A program made the translations under genes and the position numbers. DNA of 64,000 nucleotides from Utricularia gibba (lineage: Eukaryota; Plantae; Magnoliophyta), in assembly GCA_002189035.1 (NCBI GenBank), contig CM007991.1, forward strand, positions 682,001-746,000, written 5' to 3'. The notes under the pieces are model-generated. The model saw only the letters and a list, made by a program, of their open reading frames with translations, had not been told where the DNA came from and searched no databases. Shown here piece by piece: positions 175-21,085 of the stretch (the first letter of the stretch is position 1; each line of letters opens with the position of its first letter).

Positions 175-1955
175 ATGGCGAAATCGTCTTCTGGTTCGCT
201 ACTGGCTTCTTCTCCTTTTCGCATCTTCGTCCCAGAGGCGAAGCTTTGCTTTTTCTCTTCGCACTGGCCATCCTCTTCTCCATCTTCTTGCAGCAAATCT
301 CAGCCACTTCCGCCGCCGACTTCGAGGGATTCGATGCCGACGAAGATGAGGAGTTCCTAGTCCCCGATGCTAAGGAAGATTATTCCTTTTCTTCCTATCG
401 CACCCCGCACCCATCCATATCACTTTCCACTTCTACGCCGGAGTCTGAACGTGGTCCCCCAGACTCCCCCGTCGCCGATCAGGGTTCCGGTTCCACTCCG
501 AATGCCCCGACCACTTCCTCTTCATCGTTTGACTACTGGGACGAGGATGAATTCGAGGGTATTCCGCAGGAATCGAGTGTTCCTTCAGAAGGGAGGGCGG
601 CTACTGAGTCGAAACCGGATTCGGGTTCGGAGGCTGAGAAATTGGACGAAGATTCTGAATCGACCGCTGGAACCCAGTTCAGGATTGGTTCGTATTCCGT
701 TGAGATTGTTTGCGTTTCGTTTTTGATAATGTTTGCGATTAATTATTTCACCGGGAAAAGAGAGAACGAAAACATTGCGTTTGCCTGGGCGAGTAAGTTC
801 GCAGTTAAGGACTCAATTTTCGACAAGAATTTCAGTTTGCTAGGAGTCGGGGAGTCTGATGGTGCACCCCTTTGGTTGAAGGAGGGACAGAACATCTTCA
901 AGTTTTATGCAAGTGGAAGGAGATTTTGCACTGGGCTGCTGGCAACCATGGAGCTCAAAAGTAGGCATGATTTGATCTCCAAGTTGTACAATATGGTGAT
1001 TCCTTGCCAGGATGAGATCACTTTTGAAGTTTACATGAACGATGATGCAATGGATCATGTGATCTTCGCGTTAGCACGGAAGAAATTGGCAAAGACAATG
1101 CAAAAAGAGGTTAAAGATTTGCAGAGGTTTGCGGCGTTAGTGACGCCTCCTAGTGGGAGAAAGTGGGTTGCGGAGGAGCTGCAGGCTGTGGCAGAATCGA
1201 AGGAGGTTGCGGGAGATTTACTCACTGATGCTGTGCTTGATCAGGTTTGATCTAAAATCTCCCTTTTTCTTCCAGCCCTTCATCTAGTTGATATTCACAT
1301 TGTTTGTAGCTGCCGCTTGGCCTTCTAATCCCTCCCTCTCCCTTCCCCAGTGCTTATTTTTTGTCAGTTTGTATGCTAAAATGATGAACTGAAAATTGTG
1401 CTGCTGCATTTTCTGGGCATACATTTAGGTGTTCGGTGATAAATCCTTTGAAAAGTTTGGAAAGGGTTTCATCTCAATGCACTTGTCAGACCAACACGCT
1501 GGTTCTAACAAGAAGATGCTGGTATTCAAATTTGCTCTCCCTGATGTCGACCATATGGCTGACATGACTCGGTTGGTTGCTCTTGTACCATACTACATTG
1601 ATCAAATTGGGCGATACAAACTTAGCTCACATGTAAGCATTGAAAAGTCTGTTGATGTAATGTAGTCCCAAACTGATCAAATGCATAATCTGGTCACTTA
1701 TCTGCTTTTGTATACATACCTCAGGCTCGAACCAAAACAGAGGCAGCCAGATCAAAGGTTGCCCAAGAGGAGTACAAAGAACTTCAAAACAGCCGGCAGG
1801 AAGCCTTGCAGAAGAAGAAGGCTGAGGAAAGGAAGAAAGTGGAGGAGGCTGAAGCTAAGCTAAGCGCCGAAGCCCTTCGTAAGAAGGAAGCAAAAGAGCG
1901 TGCCCGCCAAATGAAGAAGGCCATGCCAAAGCTCAAGATGACCAGAGCTCATTAG
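175..1955 (+). CDS. DUF1682 / CCDC47 (PAT complex subunit)-like ER membrane protein, 3 exons (175-1244, 1429-1632, 1725-1955)
   Basis: Signal peptide, acidic low-complexity region, TM segment (SYSVEIVCVSFLIMFAINYFTGK), FYASGRR motif and Lys/Glu-rich coiled C-terminus ending MTRAH-TAG. GT-AG junctions are in phase. The ORF-track frame has no upstream ATG; ATG175 joins it if one T is restored in the T-run at 245-247. Confidence 0.88.
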
Positions 1956-3499: not shown

Positions 3500-4680
3500 A
3501 TGGGCTTCTCACGAAAATGGCAATGCTGTCTGCCCATACTCCTGATTGTGGTGTTGAATTTGGGTGCATTTTGCTTTGGAGATGTGTATGATCCAAATGA
3601 CTGGAGAGGTGGTTGGGATTGGGGAGGAAGAAGGCGAGGCTGGGGAGGACCGGGTGGCTATCGTCGTGGATGGGGCGGGCCGGGTGATTACGGTAGGGGA
3701 GGAGGCGGGTATGGACCCGGTGTTGGTCCTAGAGGAGGATTCGGACGCGGTGGCGGATTCGGCGGTGGGGTTGGTGCGGGTGGTCCAGGAGGTGGAATCG
3801 GAGCCGGAGGAGGAGGAGGAAGTGGAGGTGGAGGCCCCGGAGGAGGATTCGGTCAAGGTAGTGGGTTTGGAGCTGGTGTCGGTACCGGTGGCCCAGGTGG
3901 TGGCATCGGTGCCGGAGGCGGTGGTGGTGGCGGAAGTGGAGGTGGAGGCCCTAGAGGTGGATTCGGACAAGGTAGCGGATTTGGAGCCGGTGTCGGTACT
4001 AGCGGCCCCGGAGGTGGAATCGGCGCAGGAGGCGGAGGTGGTGGCGGAAGTGGAGGAGGAGGCCCTGGAGGAGGATTCGGACAAGGGAGCGGATTTGGGG
4101 CTGGTGTCGGTACTAGCGGCCCCGGAGGTGGAATCGGCGCAGGAGGCGGAGGTGGTGGCGGAAGTGGAGGAGGAGGCCCCGGAGGAGGATTCGGAAAAGG
4201 GAGCGGATTTGGGGCTGGTGTCGGTACTAGCGGCCCGGAGGTGGAATCGGCGCAGGAGGCGGAGGTGGTGGCGGAAGTGGAGGAGGAGGCCCCGGAGGAG
4301 GATTCGGACAAGGGAGCGGATTTGGGGCTGGTGTCGGTACTAGCGGCCCCGGAGGTGGAATCGGCGCCGGAGGCGGAGGCGGCGGCGGAAGTGGAGGTGG
4401 AGGATTCGGTCAAGGCAGCGGATTTGGAGCTGGTGTCGGAACCAGCGGCCCCGGAGGTGGAATCGGCGCCGGAGGCGGAGGCGGTGGTGGAAGTGGAGGC
4501 GGGGGTCCTAGAGGAGGAGGATTCGGTCAAGGCAGCGGATTTGGCGCCGGCATCGGGGCGCAGGTTGAGGAGCCACTCCACTCCACTCTGGATGAAGCAA
4601 AAGAGACAATGTCTTTCTTGTCCTCCATACTATACAACAATGCTTTGCAAGTCCCCGAAATCACTAGTGCGTTCATGTGA
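3500..4680 (+). CDS. Secreted glycine-rich cell-wall-type protein (GRP), single exon, with a probable 1-bp assembly deletion at 4234-4236
   Basis: Signal peptide (MGFSRKWQCCLPILLIVVLNLGAFCFG), Trp/Arg/Gly N-terminus, then about 8 Gly-rich repeats. Restoring one C (cggccc to cggcccc, as in the neighbouring repeats) keeps the Gly frame to ...GIGAQVEEPLHSTLDEAKETMSFLSSILYNNALQVPEITSAFM-TGA(4678-4680). Confidence 0.88.
3734..4560 (+). repeat. Coding tandem repeat, about 8 units, core period 114 bp (38 aa: GGFGQGSGFGAGVGTSGPGGGIGAGGGGGGGSGGGGPG)
   Basis: The GGA-TTC anchor recurs at 3959, 4073, 4187 and 4300 (spacings 114, 114, 113). Confidence 0.93.
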
Positions 4681-5244
4681 ATAAAAGACACACATGATTA
4701 ACCAAACATGAATCCATCGCTGGTGATAAAATGAAAAAAAAAGGATGAAATTTAATTTAATTGGTATTTTTATTTTTTATATAATATTTTTTATTCCAAA
4801 ATTAGATGGAATTTGAAAAGATTCCATGATATTGAAAGGAAGTACAGTTATATCATATCCCTACAATTAATAAATACATCCCAATTTATTCCCAAAGGAA
4901 ATGAGTCAATGACTAGTGAGCATTGAGTTGACTATGGATTTGACTTGCTTTGACTTTTAAATGCCACATTCTAAAGTAAAAAATGTGAAGAAAAAAAAAG
5001 GGACCTAATTGACAACTCTTCCCTCTGTGGGCGCCGTTCCTCGCCTTGATATGTGGGCCTGGGCTCATCAAATATGGGCCGGGCTCCAGATTACACCTTT
5101 CAGGCCCATTATGCAACACTTTTAGACCGTTTTGTTCGGCGGCAGTCCAAGTATTTTGCAACTTTCAGGCCCAGGCAATTAAATTGAGTATCCAAGTGGC
5201 ACCAACCAATTGGATGATGAGTAAGTGAAAACCCATGCACGTTT

Positions 5245-5552: not shown

Positions 5553-6064
5553 TTAGGGTATTTCAATTTCTAAAAAATAAAAAGTACTTATTAATTTTTA
5601 ATTTTTTCAAATCGAATTTAATCGTAGTTAATAATGAAAGTGATTCTTAAACACTTCATCAAAAATAGAAGCTATTCCAAATAAATTTATTTTTTCAAAT
5701 CAAATTCTTGATGCTCATACTTAGATTCATTCTTTCATGAGACCTAAAATAGTGTATAAGTGATAGTTTGCATGATGTACAGAGTGATAGATACGTGCAG
5801 TGCAGCTAGTAAAACCTCAACGCTGCTGGAGTCAGGCTGAGGATCGGTTGATTAGCCGAAGATTCGAAGTTCGTGGATCGATATTCTGACATATGATATG
5901 AATATAGTTGTCTTGCTTCTTACACTAAACACACGCAAATGCTAACAAAGGAAGCTAACTAGCATCCAGTACAGCAACCATTTTCACTACTGCGAATCCA
6001 ATCCTGAAAATGTTATTGGTGTGGCAACCAGCAAGGCTGAAGTGGCTTGATCAGATGGAGAAGT

Positions 6065-6410
6065 TCAGGGAAAAGGCCAAGGGAAGGGCAAAAAGGTTTG
6101 AGGAATTTGAGGTTTAGGCAAGATGGGTATAGGGAATTGGAATTGGGGTTGCGGAAGCAAGGGCAATGGAGGTAAGCAAGCGAACCCTACGCATGGCGGC
6201 GGCGGGGAGACGGCGGAGGTGGCGGGGACGGAGGCGGGGTGGTGGAGATGGTACCGGCGGGGGAGGAGACGGAGGGGGAGGTGCGCACCACGGTAATGGA
6301 GGGACACCTGGAGGTAAAGGATCCGTACACCATGCAATGGCACCCGTGACAAGAACCCCCCAAATGGCGAATCGGGCGGCGCACGACTGGATGGTCCAAA
6401 CCTTGTACAT
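6065..6410 (-). CDS. Small secreted Trp/Cys/Pro-rich extensin-like protein, paralog A (frameshifted in this assembly)
   Basis: MYKVWTIQSCAARFAIWGVLVTGAIA|WCTDPLPPGVPPLPWC-(SPn)-CVGFAC-LPPLP...WPFP-TGA. Restoring one base in each of the G-runs 6236-6239 and 6204-6207 gives a continuous Ser-Pro(n) linker; removing one base also restores frame. Homologous to intact paralog B. TATAAAA at 6456-6462. Confidence 0.8.
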
Positions 6411-9159
6411 CTTGTTTCAATGCGGGGCGTACCAGATAGAGGTTGAAAGGACCGGTTTTATACCCACAAAATCACTGCATCACCTCCCCTAGCCCTAGGG
6501 CTGGGCCTGGAAATTCCTCATTCCTCCCTGGTAACAGTACACACAGAGGAGGATCGGCCACTCAGCTCGCAAACTGCCCTTTCCAAATTCCAAGGACACA
6601 ATGCCGGTCAAGACATGCTCTCTTCTACTAAACAACATCCAGCGCTCGATCAATCGGGACCCGCCAGGAAGAAGATGGGAATCGTCGCACCACGTTGATC
6701 AAAAAACCAACTGTTAAATTCAATATAAGATGGGTGGGACAACCACGTGAAAACTAAGCATATATCATATTAAAAAAAATTAGATTCAATTAATTATTAG
6801 TAATCTATAATTTATTTCTATATACTTAATCGTTTTTGTTTTATATTCTGATATGGAACCGTTTGTTCTAATACCAATGACTATAGGTCAAACACGAAGA
6901 TTTTGTTATGGTTTATTAAAAAATTGACCATACTTTATTAAGTGTGTGATAAAAATAAATATCGTATATATAAAAAATTATTCTTAATATATGAAAAAGA
7001 AAAATAGTATGACCAATTTTCCAAATAATTGATTTTGTTAGGGCGTAAACTAGCAAAGTGCACTGCTGATTTTTTCATTAATGATGGGAGAAAAATGGGC
7101 AGTCTTCATAAGCTTACTTCCCAGGGTTCATTCATTCATAGTTATTAAATGAAATGCATTTGGCTACTAAAAAAGGCATTAACACAAGCTGAAAATTGCA
7201 TGACCATGCCCTAGCGTTTGTAGCCATCGCAAAAACTAAGTACGAATTCAAAGGCATTAATTCACACTTTATTGACATTAAATTGTCAATTTTAATTCAT
7301 TTTCGATTAGTCTACCGATTTGCAGTCACTACGTACAATTAAAAATTATTTTATTTTATATAAATAATAATTTAATTTGATGATTAAACGTAAAACCTAT
7401 CCATCATCTAGATTTAATTAATCTTATGATTTTTATTTTAATGGTATTAAATTAATAATAGGAATTTATAATTTTTTTATAGTTTAGCCATTTTTTTCTA
7501 CGAAAGGTGGTGGGTCAAACGTGAAGCAGTTAGATCATGTAGAGATGGCGACGCGGTACGTGTCCAACTACGAATCGCAGTCGACGCGGCTTCACACGGA
7601 TGGGTGACGTGGACTGAATGTGAGGAAAGTTTTCCTTGTCCAAATGTCAACAATAGGCATAAATGAACACGCATTTATCCAACTTCGATCGACTATTCTT
7701 TCCATTGACTACAAAATAATAATAATAATTATTATTAATTGGTGTTTTAAACATTTACCATTTTTATTAACCATATATCATAAACTTATATTACATATCT
7801 TATAACTCATCTGATATAATTTGCATAATTTTTTCACATTTATAATACAACCTACCAAAAGGGGCTTAAGAGTGTGTTTTGATACGAAATTTAAATATAG
7901 TGGAAAATAGAAACATGCTAATGGAATAGTAATATATGGATATAGTTAGATATGTCTTGAGTGATAAAGTGTGAATGAGACGGAAAATATTTTATTTATA
8001 TGAAAAAATTATGATCTCATTATTTATTTATATGTAGTTCTTATTTTTATAAAATTCTACCTCCTCTAATAATATCATACTATAAATTATGAAATTTTAA
8101 ATTATGTTTTTTAATGATATGTTTTATAATTTTGTGTTAATATTTTTTATTTTTCAAAAAGGTATTTGATCTTCATAAATTTTCAAATCACAAAAAATAA
8201 ATATAATTTAAACTTTTTTACAAAATTTTAAAAAATAAATAATATAATATATTTAATTATATCATTAATGAATTCATATATGGATATTTGGATGAGGATC
8301 GGAAAATGGAACATGAAGTCCATATCCTAACCCACATATAAAATTGGATATATCCACACACAAATAAAAAACATTATTGGATATATGTAAAATTTGAGTA
8401 GCATTTATCTTACATAATTTTTTAAAATATTCACTTGTTATGCATTCATATCAAATTAAATCATTAAACATACTATTTTAATGATTATTAGTAACAAATA
8501 AATTATACCTTTTAATAGCTTCAATGATGAACATTCAACTTATTTGAAACATTTGTCCGTACTTCGATTTCAATCCAATGCACGACGTACCATATAATTC
8601 ATATAGCTTTTGTACTTTGAAATTAAATAGAAACTACATCGAACTTAGACTATTTGACTTGAATATTATCCTGAATAGAATGTATCAGGATAAATATTAA
8701 GTTTATACGTAACAAAGAACATTATATTTCTGAATTCGTTGCTCTACAATCTTCTTGTTACGTAAAGGCGAAATTTTTCATACTCTTAACCTAATCTCTT
8801 GATGATATTGCGATGGGTGTTGTCCTTCTGGCTTAAAGAATCAACTCAGATGGAAACTATGAATGATGATGATTTCTGATTGATTACACTGTGGCATCAC
8901 AGACAACACACATGGAATGGAAATGTTACATGCATTACAGAAACAGATGTGATGAAACGAGTGGGGGTGACTCCGAGGATGCCTTCATGCACTGTCACAA
9001 AACCTACTTTATTATCAGTTAGGGCAAGCCCTGAAAGATGAACTGGTACGGTGTAATTTGGGGTGTTCGAAGTCGATTTCGGTAGTGGATGATGGGGTTG
9101 TGGCAATGGTCTGTGGTAAGAGCAGGAGCAGGTCGAGGAAGAAACGGGATTTGGGGAAG

Positions 9160-9519
9160 TTAAGGAAAATGCCATGTCCAAGGAGGCATAGGAAAGGGGG
9201 GCCATGAGGGTACTGGTGGTAATGGAGGCAGAGGAGGTAAAGGAGGCCAGGGTATTGGAGGTAAGCACCAGATCCCAACGCATGGCGGCGGTGGCGTCGG
9301 TGGTGGCGGCGGCGGGGGTGCAGACGTGGGAGATGATGACGGCGCCAGTGGAGACGACGGCGGTGGAGCAGACGGCGGGGGAGGTGTGCACCATGGAAGC
9401 GGAGGAAATCCAGGAGGCACAGGATCAGTGCACCATGCAGCGGAACCCGTCACGAGAACAGCTAAAAGGGCTACATGGAGACAACACTTGACCATCCAAG
9501 TGTTGCTCATTTTGTGCAT
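9160..9519 (-). CDS. Small secreted Trp/Cys/Pro-rich extensin-like protein, paralog B (intact, 119 aa)
   Basis: Intact ORF: signal peptide ...LLAVLVTGSAA|WCTDPVPPGFPPLPWC-Pro/Ser linker-CVGIWC-LPPIPWPPLP...WHFP-TAA. TATAAATA at 9550-9557. A downstream Met (9510 or 9495) may be the true start because the TATA box is only about 31 nt from ATG9519. Confidence 0.87.
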   Translation of the reverse strand: MHKMSNTWMVKCCLHVALLAVLVTGSAAWCTDPVPPGFPPLPWCTPPPPSAPPPSSPLAPSSSPTSAPPPPPPPTPPPPCVGIWCLPPIPWPPLPPLPPLPPVPSWPPFPMPPWTWHFP

Positions 9520-9777
9520 GTGGTGTAAGAAGATGCTATCTTCTTCACCTATTTATACACCCAAATCCCTGTTTTCTTACCCAGGGCTAGCCCTAAAATT
9601 GATGACATAGGTGTCCCAAAACCTTAATTAACCATGTCTTAGAAAAGTGATCGTTATTCCACGTAGTTCCATTGAATTTGTAGTGATAATAATAGAAAAT
9701 AGGCACCCAATCAACTGATCTACGCAAATATTTTATATGTTGAGTGTCACGTCACACCTTGTCATTCGAATAATCCC

Positions 9778-9840
9778 TAGGGTTTTTGGGACGATGACGT
9801 CATTCCCTATTAGGGTTTTGGACCACACCAAAACCCTAAT
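9778..9840. promoter_or_regulatory. Telo-box (AAACCCTA) cluster with a perfect 13-bp inverted repeat and an ATGACGTCAT palindrome, upstream of paralog B
   Basis: attagggttttgg (9809-9821) and ccaaaaccctaat (9828-9840) are exact reverse complements. ATGACGTCAT at 9794-9803. A further tagggttt at 9778-9785. Confidence 0.55.
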
Positions 9841-10015
9841 TTTCCCTACTCTAAGGCCAGTAATTGAAAAAAAAATCTTTGAAAAAAATTTGCAAATATC
9901 TAAAAATGTTTCACTAGATAGGCTAGCCGACACATCGTTGAAACCTTACTTAAAAAATTAATTAACCATTAAATGCATCAAGAAAAAAACTAACCTTTAA
10001 AATTATTCATGTACG

Positions 10016-11060
10016 TTAGTTGGTAGACCACATAGGCATCACAAATGTATGTTGACTATGTAGGCATTTTTTGTCAACAAGGAAGTACGGGTTCATTCTT
10101 TGTGTACTGAAGCATGTTAAACCAGGGTTTGTGATTCCTTTGTGGGTTTGCACTTTTCCAATCTGTTTATGGGATTGTACTGATGAATTCTTGTGGATGG
10201 CAGAGAGATTTGTATAAGAGGGACATGAACTCTTCTGTTTATGGGATTGCACTGGTGCTTGCTTTTATCGCCCAGTCGAACTCGTCTGTGCGGCGAAGTT
10301 TAGACTCAGGGTTTCCATGTGATAGTAATCGTGTTAATGATTCTGCTGCACATGAGTTTATGGAGTTATCGGTGCTTGCTTATATCTTCTTAATTTCTTG
10401 TATACACCATGGTCTGAAGGGGACATTCATGCCTTCTCAGCGAATAGAACGAACCTCTGTTCGCTGTAAGAACGAGCTGCCAACAGTCATTGGGCTCCAA
10501 GAAAGTAAAAACAGACTAGGGAAATGCTGTTTCTCATCCCAGGTCTCTTCCTCCACACCCAGATCGCCCCAGCAAGAAAGAGAAGGGTGGTGAAAAAGAT
10601 GTAGAACCAAAACCCTCATTTTCAGATTTTGTACAGATGGAAGATTCAGGATCAAAACTCTCATCTCTTCCAACACACAAAAGAGGAGAATGAGAAGCAT
10701 TTTGGTCATCCAAAACTGCACTGATGAAAACTGAACCGTTTCACAGACATAGAATCGCGATATTTGACAAATTTTACCACAGTGAAATGCTGTTCCAACA
10801 GCTTCTAAATGCTACTTCAAGTAACTCCAAACATGTGGGTTTCAACACCAATTTTCTGCACGCTTTTCAAAGCTTTGATCGCTTTCTTTCGTCTTCCAAA
10901 TTGATGCAATGGTGACGTCGCATGCACTTATCGGGAAGTGTAGGGGGCCAGACTGACTTCAATGCCATAGCAGCTGCAGGATGAATCGTTCTACCACGCA
11001 ACAAGAGAAACGGTCCTCGCAAAATACAAATTCCACATATTCGAGAATAGGGTTTCTTAT
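10016..11060 (-). pseudogene. Possible decayed coding or transposon relic with degenerate internal repeats
   Basis: Moderate-GC island between AT-rich spacers, with broken minus-strand frames (VQSHKQ twice, VQTHK). Repeated ctgtttatgggattg(t/c)act at about 10165 and 10235, and ggtgcttgctt at about 10254 and 10371. No family recognised. Confidence 0.3.
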
Positions 11061-11686
11061 CCACAATAAACGAAAAAAAAATCATTATGAGAGTAAAATA
11101 ATTATATATTAAAAAAATTTTAAACATTTTTCCAATATGTTTCAAATAGAGCTATAGATCGAGACTTATTTTTTTATTCATATCAGATTAAAAATACTAG
11201 CGAATTGAAATAAAAAATCGTTCATATTTTAAAATAAAACTGATTTTAAAAACGTTTTTCCATATGCTCCAAATAGAGTTTTAAATTGAAACTTCTATAC
11301 AAAATATTTATTTATTTTTTTATTTGCATCAGATTAATAATAATTATCCTTAAAAAGTTTTAAGAATTACTACAAAATTATATATAAACAATTTAATAAT
11401 ATATATACATATGGATTTTTTTTAATAACTCGAGGATGAGTAGCTGAGCCGTGGTGTGCAAAAGATTTTTTTCTTTTTAGGGTATTATTTTGTGGATATT
11501 TTCAAGCAAATATTTATATTTTATATTTAATGCATGTGGGAGATATTTACTATTTAGGTGGGGAGGCGACTTGCAGCGGTCTTCCTACGCGGCTTGGGGT
11601 GAAGCTGAACGGAAGAAAAACACGAAAACGAAGTCAGCAGTCCATGAAAACGAAGGGAAAGCTGACATTTTCCATTTCTCAGACGC

Positions 11687-11693
11687 TATAAAT
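11687..11693 (+). promoter_or_regulatory. TATA box of the GDSL-like gene
   Basis: TATAAAT about 76 nt upstream of ATG11769. Confidence 0.55.
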
Positions 11694-11768
11694 TCAGGCA
11701 CTTCCATCCAACCAACGCATCATTCATCTTCCTCTTCATCTTCAACCTCAGAAGTTGACAAATAAATC

Positions 11769-13090
11769 ATGGGTTCCTTTTCTCAGCTCTTCTTGATTCT
11801 GGTTGGTGTCATGTGCATGGCGAGTCTGGTTTCTGCACAAAACAATAACAGTAATCCGGTGTGCCCTTTTCCGTATCTGTACCATTTCGGCGACGGCGCC
11901 ACTGACGTTGGGAACTCCGTCCTGGTCCAACCATGGGGGTCGCTGCTGCCGCCCACACGTGCGCCTTACGGCCGGACGTACCCCGGGGCCCCCAACGGGA
12001 GGTGGTCCGATGGGTTAGTCGATTTCGACTTCGCGGCGTTTGATTTCGGGTTCCCGGAAATCGTACCTTACCTATCCGAGAAGTCGAACTCCAGCAACGG
12101 TGTTATCTTCTCGGTTGCCAGAAGTCCGGTGATGGACAACGGCTTCTTCTCGCGAAGAGGCATAAGAATTCCACCCTACGCCGTTTCCCTCGACTCCCAG
12201 CTCCGATGGTTCAGAACCCACCTCCAATCCGTGTGCGGGGGTTCATCCGTTTGCATCGCCGATCGGCTGGCAAATTCCTTGGTGTTGTTGGGAGACCTCG
12301 AAGCAAACGACATCGGATATGCGTTGACACAGGGGAAGACCCTCCAAGAAGCGCAGTCTTACATCGGCCCCATCACCAGGGAGCAAATCAAGGCCACCAG
12401 AGTAAGCAATCACTTCATCTGTCTAGTTAACCAAACTTATAGCGTTCCTAATGTCACCGTCGCCTATTTGCAGGAACTCATCAGAATGGGTGCCAGGCTC
12501 ATCGTTATTCCGGGCAGTGCCCCCCTCGGCTGCTTCCCCTACATTCTAACTGCTCTGCCCTCCGACAGTCCCGCCGCCTATGACCGTCGCGGATGCCACG
12601 ACGGCGTCAACAGACTGATCACCTTGAAAAACAACTATCTGAGGCGAGCCATCAACAATCTGGGCCAGGAGTTCCCCAACGTCACCCTCATCTACGGAGC
12701 CTTCGACGAGGGTTTCTTGCAAATTCTCGATAGACTGCAACAAGGCAAGTCCACACCCATTTTCTCACTTCCAACACCTAGAACACGCACTCATCCATAA
12801 ACCCTGAAGTTTTTAAGGGTGGTCCTAAAATTGAGTCATTGCTGTGAACTGCAGAAGGCCATGCAGACACTGCCCTGAAAGCCTGCTGCGGCATCGGAGG
12901 AGAATACAACTACAGCAGCAACAGATTCTGCGGGAGCGCCGGAGTGCCGGCGTGCTCGAACCCACAACACCATATGTTCTGGGATGGCATCCACTTCACG
13001 CAGGAGATCGCCGTCCGCATCGAGCAGAGCCTCATTCAACCAACTCTGGCGGCTCTCAACTGCACAGCCCTGCCATCCGCCTTCTCCTGA
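11769..13090 (+). CDS. Secreted GDSL/SGNH-fold esterase-lipase-like protein with a non-canonical catalytic site; exons 11769-12401, 12474-12744, 12855-13090
   Basis: Signal peptide; blocks LYHFGDGATDVGN, GRWSDG, GDLEANDIG, PLGCFP, KACCG and FWDGIHFT; ends ...SAFS-TGA. Intron 2 has a GC donor (AAG|GCAAGT). Confidence 0.92.
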
Positions 13091-14435
13091 ATGCCAATCC
13101 CTTTTCTTCTTTTCAAGTACAGGCCCGGCTAGTACACGATAAGTTCTTTGATTGTTTCCAATGCAACAGCAAATGTAAACAGCCATCCTATCGGCATTAT
13201 AACAGCAAGAAATGGAATGTTCTTGTACCAAAAACAACTATCCAATTTCAGACAAGAAAACAATAATCTTGGTCAGAAAAAAAAATCACCTGTATTACAA
13301 TTGGAGGATCGAATGGGAACCAATGGAATGCCTATGATTGATATACTAGTGAATTTTAGAAAACATTATCCTCGTTTTCAAAAATTATCATCCTATACTT
13401 TATTACTCATACATAGTAATAAAATTATATAATTAAGGATGATTATTTGTCGCACAAAAAATTATAAATGATCATTCTTCAAAATAACCTATTTTTAAAA
13501 ACCTAAGATCAAGTATATGTAAAACTTGACCAGCATTCGGGTCTCCATATTTCAGATTAGTGGCATGAAATATTTTTTTTAAAAAAATGGTCAATTAATT
13601 TATACATTAATTAAATAAATCAAATGTATTTTATGAAATGAAGCGTTGATATTTTGAAGCATTAATATATAATTTCAATTATTTTTTAAAAATTAAATAA
13701 AACCATGCGTAATTACAATTACCTTAATTTAAACAATATTATCCACAAAAAAGTCCGCCGCATAACATTTTGGAGGTGTGAAGTTGGTACGAAAGGTCAA
13801 AAATTATATAAATTAATATTTTATTATATTAAATTTTATTTTTTTATTTTCAATCTCAGTCTTCAGGACGTCATCCAGATCACGTATTGAATGATTATGG
13901 ATATTTATCTTGAACTTTGACTCAATCAAAATTTAATTTAAAAATTAGAAATTATTTATTTAAGTTTAAATATTTACTGATAAACAATTAAGTTGAAGTA
14001 TTTATAAAATAAACTATGTAATACGATATATTATTATATTAAGTCATTATGTTTTATTTGATTGATATTAAACGCCTTCCGTTTCCAGACAGCATGGTTT
14101 TAGGGTTTTAGAAAACGTGATGTAAATGCATGAATAGAAAGGGAGGTGATTTTCAGTGATGAACACATGCGACGAATAACATCGCACACGACACACGAAC
14201 TCACACATGCGATGGAAACTCACATCAAGTACAACGTGAAGATATAGCTTTGAATGATGGATGGATGGTGTTCACTTTGAGCACTACGAATCCAATCCTG
14301 GATTCTTATTGTTTCATACTGCAGGTACACAGAAGCCTGGAGAACCAATGTTGAAATCGCGGATGGCGGAGGCGGATGGCAGAGGGGAACGGCGGTGAAG
14401 CTGCGGATGGCGGCGGTGACAAGTAGCAGCTAAGG

Positions 14436-14788
14436 CTAAGGAAAGGGCTTCGGGAATGGATTAGGGAACCCAGGTGGCAGAGGGATCACAGGCGGCATAG
14501 GCAGCGGAGGCGGCAGAGGCAACGGAGGCGGCAGAGGCAGAGGAGGAGGGCAAACCGGCCATTTGCATGGTGACGGCGGTGGAGATGGCGGGGGTGGCGG
14601 AGACGGTGGGGGAGGGGAGGCGAGGGTGGTGGAGGGGGAGACGGCGGCGGTGGAGGCGGACAAGGTATAGTAGGAAACCCGGGCGGAAGCCAAGGGGGTA
14701 TTGGATCATTGCACCATCCCTGGGAATGGGTTACCAAGACCCCAAGAAGGCTGAGCACGAAGCAAATCTTGATCCTCATTTTCTCCAT
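14436..14788 (-). CDS. Small secreted Trp/Cys/Pro-rich extensin-like protein, paralog C (1-bp frameshift at 14614-14617)
   Basis: MEKMRIKICFVLSLLGVLVTHSQG|WCNDPIPPWLPPGFPTIPC-(SP4-6)n-CKWPVC-PPPLPLPPP...KPFP-TAG after restoring one base in the G-run. The start region aligns with B (MEKM vs MHKM). TATAAATA at 14827-14834. Confidence 0.82.
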
Positions 14789-14983
14789 GTGCGGGTGTGC
14801 AGATGCAAGAAGCTTCATCACCTCTCTATTTATACCCAAACAGAGGCTCGAGTAACTCCACTGTAGGCATAGCCTAATTACTCTCGCATATTAAAAACCA
14901 TTTTCCCAAAGTCCTTATCCGATGCAATTTGACATTAAATTACTAATCAAACTTCAAACGCGGGTAACACAGCTCCATAAAAG

Positions 14984-15051
14984 CAGAATCAAATGAAATC
15001 ATGGAGGAGGAGACTTACAGAATCGAACGAAATCATGGAAGAGGAGACTTA
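14984..15051. repeat. Tandem duplication, 2 x 34 bp, 3 mismatches
   Basis: cagaatcaaatgaaatcatggaggaggagactta / cagaatcgaacgaaatcatggaagaggagactta. Confidence 0.9.
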
Positions 15052-15190
15052 CGAGGGTTGTCATGCAGATTCATTCCCCTTCCCTGGAGGGAGGGGTGTG
15101 TCCGTATCCACGTGCTCCATAATGTCTATTACACTAGCTTCTGTTATTTAAATTTAAATAAAACGTGAGACAATTGTTTGTGTGTCACGT

Positions 15191-15410
15191 TGTGTTTGGT
15201 TTCAGTGTTTAAAAATTAAAATTTAAGGGGAGATAATATAAAGTATCGACCATACCACAACTTTATATCGGTAAATTATATTAATGTTCTTTTATTAATA
15301 CAAAGTTTCTTCAAACCCACCAATATGATGGATTTGAATAAACAGATGTAGCTTACAAATCTCGGATTTATATCGAATCCGAGATTAAAATATCTATACT
15401 ACCAAACATA
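15191..15410. mobile_element. Possible MITE with TGTTTGGT/ACCAAACA termini and an internal perfect 11-bp hairpin
   Basis: tgtgtttggt at 15191-15200 and accaaacata at 15401-15410. aatctcggatt (15358-15368) pairs with aatccgagatt (15376-15386). Target-site duplication not identified. Confidence 0.4.
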
Positions 15411-16551
15411 TTATATGTATATGTATTTGTTATCCAATGAATAACACGAAATTAGGGATTTCAAATTTACAAGAACCATGTATACCAAGATTCCTAAACC
15501 CGGTTAACAAACGTGCCATTAGACACCGGTAATGAAGAATTCTCACCATTATTACAAGTCACATTACAGAGTAAAAATCGGGTACTGTCCAATTAAGAAC
15601 AAAAGAGACTGGTCACTTGATTAGGCCGCAGTTGTACATAAAATAAGGAGGAGCATTCACTCATGATGCCGATGTCTCATCACGAGCCTCATAAATGCAC
15701 TTCTCTTCTGACCCAAGCTCATCTGCAAATCCACGAGCATTGACCAATGTTTTTGTGGACTGATTTAGAAAATTGATTATCTATACATTTTATCTTATAT
15801 ACTAAATTAAAAAATTTATATTATGAATGATTATTTTTTTCATACAATATCTGACATATAACCAAATTTCTAATTCATCCTGTTTTTTTCTCCCAAGTCC
15901 TTTGCCCATGTTTTACTTTAATGAATACAAAGTCTGTTAAAATGTGACATTATTCCTCGTATTAAGGCGTACTATAGTTATTACGATTTATCTATGTAAT
16001 TTTCCTATAAAATAGTATTTTTTATTAATTAATACAATTTTATAAAGCCAATATTAAAATTATATTTTAATATTATTATCTTTTCACTATGTTAATTACC
16101 AAATAACCCTTAAATATGGGAATTGAGCTTGGGCCAATATCTGGGAGCCCAATTTGGTCAAGTGCAGAGTCCAATATGTGGGCCTCGTTTTGATTCGGGC
16201 AGTTAAGGCAGCCCGCATTTTTTGATTCAGCAAGACACAAAATCAAAACCTATGAGACATTTTGAGTGGTCCTCCCGACTAACGAGGGAGAGAAAGGCAA
16301 TTTTGTTTAGAACCATTTATTTTAGTCCAGATGGAAGTATTTTGCTGAATCTCCTTCCATGGGCTACGAGAGTGGGCATTCATTTGCGTGGACTTTTGGA
16401 CTAGTTTCAGAAAGGGTCTTTGCTTCACCTATATGAAATGCTCAAGTGTCAATATGGTGGCCTGCGGCCTTATCTATGCATACGCCACTTCTTTAGTGTG
16501 AGAAGGGATCGGTTGGATCTCAGACAAGCTCCGACTCTGAAACCAGCAGCC

Positions 16552-18516
16552 ATGCAGGAGGACGATCTGTATACAAAGGATGGAACTGTGGATTTTCATG
16601 GTAATCCAGCAAAGAAGAAATCTTCTGGAACATGGAAAGCTTGTCCCTTCATTTTAGGTGCTGCTGCGTTCATTCTTTTCCTTTTGAGTATGTGTATGAA
16701 TTTATGCTGCTTGGATGTAATGATTTGTGGGGTGCTCACAGGAAATGAATGCTCTGAGAGACTGGCTTATTATGGGATGTGCTCCAATCTAGTGGTCTAC
16801 TTCAAGACCAAGCTGGGCCAACACAGTGCCACGGCTTCCAAAAGTGTTTCAAATTGGTCGGGAACTTGCTACATAACCACCTTGATCGGAGCTTTCCTCG
16901 CGGATGCGTATATCGGGAGATATTGGACGATTGCAATCTTTTCGATCATCTATGCTATGGTGAGCTTTTTTGGTCTTATCAGTGCTTGGTAGCTTAAGAA
17001 CTAAGTGCGTTTCAATATGATGTGTGTAGGGGATGATTCTGTTGACTTTATCAGCATCTATACCTGGGCTAAAGCCGGGAAACTGTGGAGGAGGCATCTG
17101 TCATGCGACAGGGGAGCAGCTCGCTGTTTTCTTCGTTGCTCTTTACATGGTTGCACTTGGAACAGGGGGAATAAAATCATGCGTTTCCCCATTTGGGGCA
17201 GATCAGTTTGATGATAACGATGATTTGGAGAAGAAGCATAAGAGCTCCTTCTTCAACTGGTTCTACTTGTCGATCAATATCGGTGCGTTGGTGGCTGGTT
17301 CTGTGCTTGTTTGGGTGCAAACATATGTTAACTGGCAGTGGGGGTTCGGTATTCCAGCTGCGGCTATGGTGTTTGCTACCATTTCATTCTTCACCGGAAC
17401 ACGATTGTATCGACACCAGAAGCCTGGTGGGAGTCCCCTTTCAAGGATTTGTCAGGTTGTGGTGGCATCTTGCAGAAAGTTCAAGGTGAAAGTCCCTGAA
17501 GATGAGAAGCTGCTACATGAAACTCCTGATGCTGAATCAGCCATTAGAGGAAGCAGAAAGCTTGAGCACACAAAGGATCTTTCGTAAGTCTAGTTAGTTA
17601 CTGAACAAAAACAAATGAACACTGAAGATGATGAGGGATTCCTTGAATTCTCACGTATGATCTGATACATACATGTAGATTCTTCAACAAGGCTGCGGTT
17701 GTGACGACGGAAGACAATGCTGCGGAGTCAGCAAATCCATGGCAGCTCTGCACAGTAACTCAAGTGGAAGAGCTCAAAGCTATCATCAGACTGCTTCCTG
17801 TTCTGGCCACCGGCATCATCTTCTCTGCAGCGTATAGCCAAATGGGTACACTGTTCGTGCTCCAAGGCCTGACAATGGATGCGCGGTTGGGGAATTCGAG
17901 CTTCACGATTCCGGCGGCCTCGCTGAGCATCTTCGACACCCTGAGCGTGATCTTCTGGGTGCCTGTGTATGATAAAATCATAGTTCCCGTCACCAGAAGG
18001 TTCACCGGGCACAAGAACGGCTTAACTCAGCTCCAACGAATGGGGACCGGCCTGTTCATCATCATCGTCGCCATGCTCGCCGCCGCGGTTTTGGAGGTCA
18101 TCCGGCTGGACTACGTTCGAACCCACGATGCGTATGACACACAACAGGTTCCCATGTCGATTTTCTGGCAAGTTCCACAGTACTTCATCGTAGGGTGCGC
18201 AGAGATATTCACCTACATCGGGCAACTAGAGTTCTTCTATGAACAAGCGCCGGATGCAATGAGGAGCCTCTGCTCGGCGCTGTCACTTGCAATAGGAGCT
18301 CTGGGGAGCTACGTGAGTTCCTTTCTGGTTACCCTGGTGATGCAGATCAGCACCCGCGGCGGAAAGCCGGGATGGATTCCGGATAACTTGAACTACGGCC
18401 ATATCGACTACTTCTTCTATCTCTTGGCTCTGCTGAGTGGCATCAACCTCGGAGTGTTTCTTCTGGTATCCAACTGGTATAGATACAAAAAGCCTATCGT
18501 GAAAGCAGACGACTGA
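16552..18516 (+). CDS. NPF8: NRT1/PTR family peptide transporter, NPF8 (PTR1/PTR2/PTR5-like) clade; exons 16552-16657, 16742-16959, 17030-17583, 17679-18516
   Basis: YTKDGTVD N-terminus, ExxER motif ([11 protein letters not shown]), [26 protein letters not shown] and [13 protein letters not shown]. All junctions are GT-AG and in phase. Confidence 0.95.
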
Positions 18517-19422
18517 GCATACCTCATTTGCTAAACCAATATCAACCAATGGAATGGAAGCCTATTCAGAAATGTTACCATATTTTTCAAATACTGATGA
18601 TTCTCATGCCTAATAAACATCATTTCGAAGTTCATTCCGAACCACTTAAACCTTCTGTGGTCACTCTTGTACTCAAAGGATAATCTTATTTGAATGTCAC
18701 TTATAATGATATAAATATTATAATATCTATCAAATCATGATAATTATCAATATACGTTATATATCGATCTTACTCTTTTTTTATATTAATTAAGAATTTT
18801 AGTATGCTATATTAAATAAATAATTGTATATTGAAAAATTAAAATAATAGCATCAATTAAATAAAGAGATTATAAATAATTAAAAATTGATTAGATTTAA
18901 TATTTTTTTAATTTAATTCACTTTTTTTTATTTAAATTTTACATTTGATCGTCAACCTATCTAATCCTTAATTTGAATACATGATCTTCAATCCAATTCC
19001 GGGTTTTAAAACAGCGCCCATTGGAGTAAAGTAAATCGTTAAGCATTTCAAATTAGGAGAATTCGGAATACCAGAACTCGTTCGTAGTAAATGAATTCAG
19101 TTTCTTGCATATCGACATCTAATTACAAATCAATCATATTCAATTTAATTGTTTTATGAAACTTTTTTTTTGAACGAATAGTTTCCTATTTATTTCAAAT
19201 AAATATTTTCATTTCCTTAAAATAAACTATCAATCATTCGTTTTTTAAATCAATGATAAATAAAATAATTCAAAGTTTTTATTCTAAAGAGCAGGTGCGA
19301 AAATTTAATTACTCTTCGTAGTTTTTAATGACTTAAATAATAAATTGAAAAAAAAACGGCTGACAGTTTTGAGCATTGAACAGTAAGTAATATCATATCA
19401 GTATCAGATCACAGCCACCCAA

Positions 19423-19441
19423 ACACACACACACACACACA
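19423..19441. repeat. (CA)n microsatellite
   Basis: Read directly from the sequence. Confidence 0.9.
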
Positions 19442-19617
19442 AACAATGACAGCAACAATCCAAAGAGAAAGACGCTCTCTAAGAACTCATCATCACACAC
19501 TGCATCTGGACTAAGTCGTTTATTGTCAATTCCGGTAGTAAACTAAGGCCGAAACGCATCGATGTTCGGACAAACAGGTGGACACCACGGAGGAACGCGA
19601 GCATGAGAAGCAGAAGA

Positions 19618-19856
19618 TCATTTGGGCGCGGGAGCCGGAGCAGGAGCCGACGGCGGAGGCGGGCATGGGAAGGGGGGAATATGGGGTTTGGCAGCGGCCG
19701 GAGTCCGAACTTTCTCGGAAAGGGTGGGATCGGCAATGGCGGCCACCCATTTGGTGGACCGGGGAACGGGGGCTCGCCGCCGCAAGGCCAGGCGCTGCAC
19801 TGTGCAGCAAGAAGAGCGAGGAGGCAGAAGATGAAGAAGGCTCCTTTGCTCGCCAT
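19618..19856 (-). CDS. Small secreted Trp/Cys/Pro-rich protein, divergent paralog D (about 79 aa after correction)
   Basis: MASKGAFFIFCLLALLAAQCSA|WPCGGEPPFPGPPNGWPPLPIPPFPRKFGLRPLPNPIF. Adding one base to the G6 run at 19672-19677 continues it as PPFPCPPPPSAPAPAPAPK-TGA. TATAAATA at 19904-19911. Confidence 0.75.
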
Positions 19857-21085
19857 GTTGCTGCTGTGGGGTGGGATGGAAGTGGAAGCATGGTTTCATG
19901 GAGTATTTATACAAGTAACAGCGTTGAATTCCCCCCGGAGGCTGTTGCGTGTGTGAAGTGGATTAGTGTCGTAATTACTGTTACTAATGACTAGTTTTAA
20001 TTAGGGGGATTGGTTGATTCCCCTTCTTTAAGAGGCCATTAACATATCCCAAGGGGAATTGACTGCTTCTAAAGTCTCCCCTCCTCCAACATTATTTTTT
20101 AGGGTTTGTTTAGGAGTATGTGTTTAACTTAATTAATATTAAATATGAATGACATTAATATACATAAAAGTAAATAATTTTTTTTAAAAAATAATTGTAT
20201 TTTATAGAAATTATTCTTTTAAATAAATTTATATATAATATTAGCAAAATTCTTATAATAAATAATTAAAATAATTTTTTAAGATAATAAGAATAATAAC
20301 ATATTTTAAGATCAATCTAATAAATAAATTTGTGTATTCATCCTAAATAAAATTTTAAACAACTAAAGTTACTTGAATATCTAATCTATAATAAATAATA
20401 TTATCTAACATAAAGCAATATTTTATATTCTATCAAAAGAGTCCTTAATATTTAATATACCATAGTACAATAGAATAATTGTACAATATGACGACATTCT
20501 TGTAAAATATTATTCATTATAAATTCAATCAAATTCTTAATGGTTTTACACCTATTTGAAGTATGTCAATAGCATGATGCTTGCTTCAATTTTCAATGGT
20601 AATAACTAATAAGATTTAACACAAGGGTCTAATCTATAAATTGATGTAAAAACTTTAGATAAATTCTATATCAATTCAGATGAAATATAAAAAATAATTT
20701 ATATAAAATAATATTTCATAATTTTGTATAAAAGATTTTCATTAAAATAAAATAATATAAAATCGTGAAAATTGAATAATATTATACAAAAGTTTAATAC
20801 ATGAATTTAAAAGATTTAATTTACCCATCTGATTTAAATATACAAAGCGTAAATCCACAAATTGGTGTAAATTCAAACACAGGGGGAAGTCGATTAATGT
20901 GACAATGTTCATTTTTACATTTACATAGGTATCACAAAAAGTTTGGAACCAACAGGGAGAGGCTTTTGACCAAGAAAATGGGGTTAATGTGATATTAACT
21001 ATGATCCAGGGGTGATCCTGAATTTACCCAAAATGCCTCTGCTGCACAATCCTTCTTCCATAAACAGCAGAGAGCCCATTGAATC

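Follow-up and report, generated by a model that had tools for sequence, protein, structure and literature searches.

Small proline-rich protein genes in Utricularia gibba: three paralogs and an adjacent look-alike, apparently lineage-specific and unannotated

Four short loci on the minus strand of a Utricularia gibba contig (CM007991.1, positions 682,001 to 746,000) raise the question whether they are genes at all, whether they form one family, and to which kind of plant protein their products belong. The whole stretch analysed, here called the window, is 64 kb of plant nuclear DNA, and the loci, A to D, are numbered by window position. On balance, the sequences favour the reading that A, B and C are genuine single-exon paralogs which are transcribed and encode a lineage-specific secreted Pro-rich protein, that D is a neighbouring gene of broadly similar type, and that the products are hybrids of short extensins and PR peptides, located in the wall or a surface matrix. 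The gene models are:

6065-6410, minus strand: gene A; ATG at 6410, stop TGA; signal peptide, W-C-T-D-P loop (C-x13-C), S/P-rich linker, CVGFAC, hydrophobic Pro/Phe/Leu tail, end WPFP
9160-9519, minus strand: gene B; ATG at 9519, stop TAA; 119 amino acids (aa); CVGIWC, LPPLP-type tail, end WHFP; the sole copy with an intact frame in the assembly
14436-14788, minus strand: gene C; ATG at 14788, stop TAG; signal peptide, W-C-N-D-P loop (C-x16-C), SP4-6 repeats, CKWPVC, (PPPLPL)3-type tail, end KPFP
19618-19856, minus strand: gene D; ATG at 19856, stop TGA; signal peptide, W-P-C, hydrophobic Pro-rich stretch, F-P-C-PPPP-S-(AP)4-K

All four loci that the first-pass annotation had placed on the minus strand were recovered there, with their TATA boxes and signal peptides. 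Inspection of the sequence located a TATAAA(A/T) box 38-55 nt upstream of the ATG in every gene:

6456-6462, minus strand: TATAAAA box of A, 52 nt upstream of the ATG
9550-9557, minus strand: TATAAATA box of B, 38 nt upstream of the ATG
14827-14834, minus strand: TATAAATA box of C, 46 nt upstream of the ATG; RNA coverage from 14785
19904-19911, minus strand: TATAAATA box of D, 55 nt upstream of the ATG

A plausible hydrophobic N-terminal signal peptide, its positions -3 and -1 occupied by small residues, was found in A, B, C and D. In A-C it contains (G/A)VLVT, and the predicted mature start, W-C-x-D-P, is invariant. The first Cys pair is spaced by 13 residues in A and B and by 16 in C, and the second pair is C-x4-C in all three. 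The tail that follows has 34-37 residues, lacks Cys, is rich in Leu, Phe, Trp and Pro, and ends in Phe-Pro ahead of three different stop codons (TGA, TAA and TAG in A, B and C). D has a W-x-C start (W-P-C) and one later Cys in a P-C-PPPP-S-A-P context, and resembles A-C there. Most of these features had been described beforehand, and they were seen in the sequence; the SP4-6 linker ascribed to A-C exists in A and C (as SP3-6) but not in B, which like D is without any SPPP. No promoter element beyond the TATA box was shared by at least three of the four genes; L1-box, W-box and other elements were scattered and uninformative. By these features A, B, C and D look like real genes.

To the question of relatedness the comparison of the products gave a clear answer for three of the four. 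B and C matched at the N-terminus in BLASTP with composition adjustment at E=1e-10, and A and B could be aligned as DNA from upstream of the TATA box through to the stop, promoter included. Judged by sequence, the similarity among A-C is true homology and not a matter of composition. The best match between D and B had E=0.14 and was located in the signal peptide; D, which is like A-C in composition only, was therefore counted as a look-alike and not as a member, that is, as a clustered gene not demonstrably homologous to A-C by sequence. Thus the family of four proposed earlier keeps three paralogs and loses D. No further members were found in the window by tblastn without low-complexity filter. 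The other matches lay at 3600-4600 only and were compositional, on the antisense of a Gly-rich gene at 3500-4684; this antisense holds a long spurious Pro-rich open reading frame (ORF), which draws all of the compositional matches.

The rates of synonymous (dS) and nonsynonymous (dN) change were calculated after Nei and Gojobori, each side of the frame breaks described below being treated by itself. dS was 0.94-0.96 between A and B and 1.4-2.6 between C and B. The dN/dS ratio was 0.28 in the N-terminal and 0.29 in the C-terminal part of A against B, and 0.20 before and 0.08 after the break of C against B. Since dS is about 1 or more and dN/dS stays at 0.08-0.29 in both halves, A-C are old paralogs kept under purifying selection. 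The shared C-terminus is included in this constraint, in agreement with the earlier suggestion that it is under selection.

Whether the loci are transcribed was examined on contigs from two DNA runs (X1, X5) and two RNA runs (X6, X9), compared over 14300-20000 only. RNA contigs of X6 cover C at 14300-14606 and 14614-14785 and one of X9 covers 14300-14607, all of them unspliced. In its 3' part C reached a word depth of 32 and in its 5' part one of 6, compared with about 49 for the mRNA of the neighbouring NPF gene. Coverage of C begins at 14785, about 45 nt downstream of the TATA box, and runs past 14300, which outlines a long 3' untranslated region (UTR):

14062-14435, minus strand: 3' UTR of C, at least about 375 nt; 14062 is inferred from the 545-nt length of the RNA contig; AATAAA at about 14053-14058

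D is covered by unspliced RNA at low depth (4) from 19691 to 19366; a (TG)n microsatellite at 19410-19453 lies inside this transcribed 3' region. The NPF/PTR peptide or nitrate transporter gene (16478-18414, plus strand) served as an internal control for the nature of the two runs. Its three GT..AG introns (16656-16739, 16959-17028 and 17584-17678) are confirmed by RNA, and no coverage by X6 or X9 was found in the intergenic stretches 14786-16400 and 18502-19265. Because of these three joints and the lack of intergenic coverage, X6 and X9 are true RNA. No joints occur inside C or D, so both are single-exon genes. We concluded that C and D are transcribed. In the stretch of A and B (5950-9650) the RNA runs contain 10-23% of the words, a count that does not give the position within the stretch; this share agrees with one or two short transcripts of A, of B or of both.

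The RNA contigs carry no strand information, and the transcripts could in principle come from the plus strand and encode Gly-rich products or be non-coding, the Pro-rich ORFs then being mirror images. A genuine gene for a Gly-rich secreted protein indeed lies on the plus strand 1.4 kb away (3500-4684), and the synonymous pattern does not discriminate between the strands because the third positions of CCN codons coincide with those of antisense GGN codons. However, over A-D no plus-strand ORF encodes a signal peptide or has a suitably placed TATA box, nor do these ORFs read as coherently Gly-rich. On the minus strand, TATA boxes stand at -38 to -55 and are joined by signal peptides, a conserved Cys spacing and a Phe-Pro end before three different stops, and the coverage of C starts and ends where a minus-strand transcript would place it, shortly after the TATA box and some 375 nt beyond the stop. 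A plus-strand origin is therefore hardly credible.

The next question is raised by the reading frames. Three of the four copies are broken in the assembly, as noted in the first-pass annotation; these are A, C and D, and B is intact. C and D have one frame change each, but A has two, requiring two -1 shifts (or one -2 shift) and not one. Each break in A, C and D corresponds to one missing base within a run of C:

6204-6239, minus strand: frame-break interval of A; C4 runs at 6204-6207, 6224-6227 and 6236-6239, the A/B DNA alignment putting 1-nt gaps at the first and the third
14607-14614, minus strand: frame-break interval of C; C5 run at 14608-14612 and the end of a C4 run at 14614-17; spanned by no same-strain contig
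19672-19677, minus strand: C6 run of D, short by one base in the assembly; one additional G after 19671 (plus strand) in all contigs of X1, X5 and X6

In D the cause could be established. The DNA of X1 is identical to the assembly apart from the C6 run of this gene, and with the seventh C the frame continues to the stop at 19618, giving a product of 78 residues. Since the extra base at 19671/19672 is present in X1, X5 and X6 and restores the frame, the break is an assembly artefact, and D is proven to have no frameshift in the plant. Across C and D, RNA contigs and genome run colinear, and introns were rejected as a cause of the frame breaks.

For C, the same-strain RNA contigs are free of gaps over 14300-14606 and 14614-14785, so that the missing base, if it is an assembly error, has to lie within 14607-14614. 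The X5 contig crosses this break and has two substitutions there; no indel is visible at that place, the indels of this contig not being listed. Downstream of the break, all five substitutions between X5 and the assembly are synonymous in the Pro frame, which speaks indirectly for an intact C. The earlier suspicion that the frameshifts belong to the assembly is proven for D, by the seventh C in three runs. We regard the break of C as very probably an assembly artefact and the breaks of A as probably so; most likely, both genes suffered the same homopolymer under-calls as D.

X5 itself is a DNA run from 2019 with the same species label. Compared with the assembly over 14481-20000 it shows about 3% substitutions and many small intergenic indels. 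Its source is probably a divergent accession or a closely related plant, and it would help to estimate dN/dS for genes that lack annotation.

A different explanation of the breaks would be that only B and D are functional, and that A and/or C are recent, still transcribed pseudogenes with real frameshifts. A would need two 1-nt corrections within 35 nt, both in runs of just four C, and where same-strain contigs allowed a check, over about 5 kb, a single one of the 22 G/C runs with at least 4 bases was wrong. Among the contigs compared, none proves an extra base in A or C, and the one that crosses the break of C has substitutions there. Against recent decay stand the uniform kind of the breaks, all one base short and in a C run as in the proven error of D, the dN/dS of 0.08-0.29 downstream of them, the exclusively synonymous changes between accessions in the part of C behind its break, and the transcript level of C, which is similar to that of the neighbouring NPF gene. 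We consider loss of function of A or C unlikely, and the artefact to be the better account of the interrupted frames.

Relatives outside the window were sought in protein collections, not in plant genomes or transcriptome assemblies at the nucleotide level. Pfam hmmscan gave no family for B (E up to 1) or for pieces of A, C and D (E up to 10). Word-indexed HMMER against 5.8 billion proteins found nothing for whole B, for residues 1-60 of B (E<=10) or for residues 1-61 of D (E<=10). Exhaustive phmmer against 1.84 billion representatives returned 0 matches at E<=0.001, a harsh threshold for 40-bit matches. As a match of 40 bits, the size of the B-C similarity, is not significant in databases this large, distant relatives and even the true product of C could be missed. 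A look-up of exact products did not find B, the frameshifted ORFs of A, C and D or the two partial products expected from the RNA contigs on record. In the ESM Atlas only generic plant Pro-rich clusters appeared, with a score of 0.75, below the useful range. One match of the N-terminal profile in metagenome data was rejected as chance, its source being GC-rich, apparently bacterial DNA without a comparable ORF. The literature on CELP and on Pro-rich proteins of bladderworts gave nothing usable. These results support the suggestion that the genes are lineage-specific and were missed by annotation: no match was obtained in Pfam, HMMER or phmmer, and even intact B is unannotated, with no product recorded.

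What kind of proteins would these genes encode? The predicted mature parts consist of 43-59% Pro, with no Tyr, four Cys and a net charge of about 0. Mature B has 91 aa, 49% Pro, 7 Trp, 4 Cys, no Tyr, no Lys or Arg and a single Asp. SPPP occurs three times in A and at least three times in C, confined to the central block, and is absent from B and D; the linker of B instead consists of [T/A]-Pro3-7 and SP/AP dipeptides. LPPLP is present once in A and twice in B but not in C or D. AlphaFold2 predicted no fold for B beyond the signal helix (residues 6-24), at a mean pLDDT of 57, so that a fold search was not worthwhile.

Small secreted proteins from a tandem cluster of divergent paralogs could also be precursors of signalling or defence peptides, in which the W-C-x-D-P...C loop or the C-x4-C is released, like Hyp (hydroxyproline)-rich glycopeptide systemins or Cys-stapled peptides. 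About 90 mature residues behind a signal peptide, in such a cluster, are typical of peptide genes, and the invariance of W-C-x-D-P in A-C would suit a released loop. However, no dibasic or other recognisable processing sites were present, B having neither Lys nor Arg, and the purifying selection is seen from end to end, with the tail and the last C-terminal residues included, and is not restricted to one short core. No motif of a known peptide family was recognised either, and the Pfam search was empty. The lack of processing sites together with the whole-length constraint makes a peptide precursor less likely than a wall or surface protein; we consider it quite improbable.

With a wall or surface protein as the preferred reading, the known classes of Pro-rich plant proteins were compared. 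From the classical extensins A-D differ in that they match neither Extensin_2 (PF04554) nor Extensin_1 (PF02095), and the YXY/VYK Tyr cross-link motifs are missing. Classical extensins repeat SPPPP modules along the entire chain; A and C have such motifs in the central block, B and D have none. As no mature sequence contains Tyr, cross-linking of this type is impossible. Short extensins are an operational class of BIO OHIO and no homology group, defined by at least 2 SPPP, a signal peptide and a length below 200 aa (PMC5073881). A and C qualify by this definition, with <120 aa, a signal peptide and at least three SPPP/SPPPP in the central block, whereas B and D, devoid of SPPP, do not. The expected chemistry is also alike, arabinosylation of Hyp in contiguous Pro being predicted here. 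The four spaced Cys and the long hydrophobic Trp/Phe/Leu-Pro tail of A-C are foreign to short extensins, and no sequence homolog was found.

PRPs are recognised by at least 45% Pro, Val, Lys, Cys, Tyr and Thr (PVKCYT), or by repeated PPVX[KT] or KKPCPP, together with a signal peptide (PMC5073881). All four genes lie above this composition (56% in A, 63% in B, 69% in C and 52% in D) and have a signal peptide; PPVX[KT] and KKPCPP repeats were found in none of them. The PR peptides of poplar are secreted proteins of about 110-130 aa with more than 45% PVKCYT, LPPLP-type repeats and an extensin-like motif; they are tandemly clustered, lineage-expanded and of no known function, and are similar to AtPRP9/AtPRP10, the PELPK1 group (PMC5073881). 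A-D share the small size and the clustering with them, and A and B also LPPLP. Here, however, the order of modules is reversed, with the S/T-Pro block first and the LPPLP tail last, whereas the poplar peptides carry a single SPPP at the C-terminus. The W-C-x-D-P loop, the C-x4-C, the Trp richness and the near-zero charge are particular to the present genes, which have no PELPK, and exhaustive phmmer revealed no homology.

The signal peptide, the Pro-rich module and the presence of Cys are also found in the Cys-containing chimeric HRGPs, namely HyPRP, tobacco CELP and class III PELP. The eight-cysteine motif (8CM) domain of HyPRPs (Hydrophob_seed, PF14547) is not found here; there are 4 Cys only, and no Hydrophob_seed or LTP in Pfam. 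CELP and class III pistil extensin-like proteins possess a sizeable folded Cys-rich C-terminal domain with 6-8 Cys, from which we set the present genes apart by description only. A large domain of this kind is lacking here; two Cys pairs lie within Pro-rich sequence without predicted fold. The first-pass annotation had compared the genes to the solanaceous CELP/PELP and had correctly noted the missing domain, but the comparison adds little; PR peptides and short extensins are closer (PMC5073881). D taken separately was compared with the AG peptides, which have at least 35% Pro, Ala, Ser and Thr (PAST), 50-90 aa, AP/SP/TP dipeptides and usually a glycosylphosphatidylinositol (GPI) signal: its mature part has 54% PAST, the whole protein has 78 aa and it ends in S-(AP)4-K, but no hydrophobic C-terminal GPI signal is present.

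A more distant parallel is offered by maize gamma-zein, a seed storage protein of a monocot that stays in the endoplasmic reticulum; its Pro-rich domain, at the N-terminus, has (VHLPPP)8 flanked by Cys. The (PPPLPL)3 of C is likewise a PPPxxL-type hexapeptide repeat flanked by Cys, for which intermolecular disulfides and self-assembly would be possible. We take this only as a lead to how the protein may work; homology does not exist, and the amphipathic polyproline-II periodicity is not common to A-C. An amphipathic polyproline-II stripe in the tail was considered for all three and rejected: the hydrophobic moment at 120 degrees, compared with shuffles, was no more than marginal in B (P=0.05), and A and C showed no such signal.

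Several observations weigh against the reading of A-D as wall or surface proteins of hybrid type, or against parts of it. The one copy with an intact frame, B, contains no SPPP, and an extensin rod is thus no common feature; nor is an amphipathic stripe common to the tails of A-C. Both RNA contigs end exactly at the break of C, and the two breaks of A sit at C4 runs outside the stretch that was compared with contigs. Two of the five synonymous changes in X5 are CpG transitions, so mutational bias accounts for part of the synonymous signal. The minus strand of the transcripts was inferred from TATA box, signal peptide and UTR layout. Finally, secretion, intramolecular disulfides in two loops, Hyp glycosylation and all roles of A-D are inferences only, drawn from the sequences.

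Within these limits the hybrid of short extensin and PR peptide remains our best reading of the sequences, to whose plan A-C would add two Cys pairs, the absence of Tyr, a near-zero charge, Trp richness and a conserved Phe-Pro end. In such a protein, cleavage of the signal peptide would leave the invariant Trp as the first residue. The linker blocks of contiguous Pro (SP3-6 in A and C, T/A-P3-7 in B) would be hydroxylated in the secretory pathway and, following the Hyp-contiguity rule for extensin-type modules, arabinosylated to a stiff polyproline-II spacer. The four Cys may form disulfides, either as two local loops (C-x13/16-C and C-x4-C) or as intermolecular links, and the latter could replace the Tyr cross-links that are impossible in Tyr-free proteins. 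The uncharged Leu/Phe/Trp-Pro tail of LPPLP type, with its Phe-Pro end, would stay unglycosylated and might engage partners in the wall or cuticle, by hydrophobic contacts or aromatic stacking, or associate with further tails of its own kind.

The four loci do not follow each other directly: a gene for a GDSL-fold protein and the spliced NPF/PTR gene sit between them. The first (11769-12800, plus strand) encodes a secreted protein with Pfam Lipase_GDSL (E=1.5e-7); its block I reads F-G-D-G-A-T-D-V-G-N, from which we concluded that the catalytic Ser is replaced by Gly. The Gly-rich gene at 3500-4684 (plus strand) encodes a secreted protein in which a signal peptide is followed by DVYDPNDW and a repeat body of GGxGG; it leaves the Gly-rich frame after about 270 codons, probably by another under-call in a G run. 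An exon of a homolog of CCDC47, a subunit of the PAT complex (PF07946, E=2e-46), an ordinary housekeeping gene, lies at 246-1250 (plus strand).

A bolder proposal would see in the genes an undescribed family of the bladderwort lineage, encoding uncharged, Tyr-free, amphiphilic Trp/Phe-rich glycoproteins whose head is stapled by disulfides, whose rod is arabinosylated and whose tail is a hydrophobic polyproline. Their matrix, joined by disulfides and not by Tyr, would lie at the wall-cuticle or secretory surface of a specialised organ, e.g. the trap, possibly co-opted together with the neighbouring Gly-rich, GDSL-fold and peptide transporter genes. We give this proposal only a slim chance of being right. 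A-D fit within the known spectrum of small, clustered, secreted Pro-rich proteins of plants, nothing points to a function, and at present the finding remains one more lineage-specific cluster of Pro-rich genes.

For the organism, the finding means that four expressed or probably expressed genes, intact B included, are missing from the protein collections searched. Homopolymer under-calls in a long-read assembly break the frame of D, and probably those of A and C as well. As such errors fall in C runs, in which Pro-rich genes are rich, a census of secreted and cell-wall proteins of this genome would systematically undercount them. For the hydroxyproline-rich glycoproteins, A-C would present a distinct combination of modules, with Cys pairs in the place of Tyr, a near-neutral charge, a Trp-rich LPPLP tail and a conserved Phe-Pro end. 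If the Cys do link molecules, this would be, if true, an alternative way to build a Pro-rich network in the plant cell wall.

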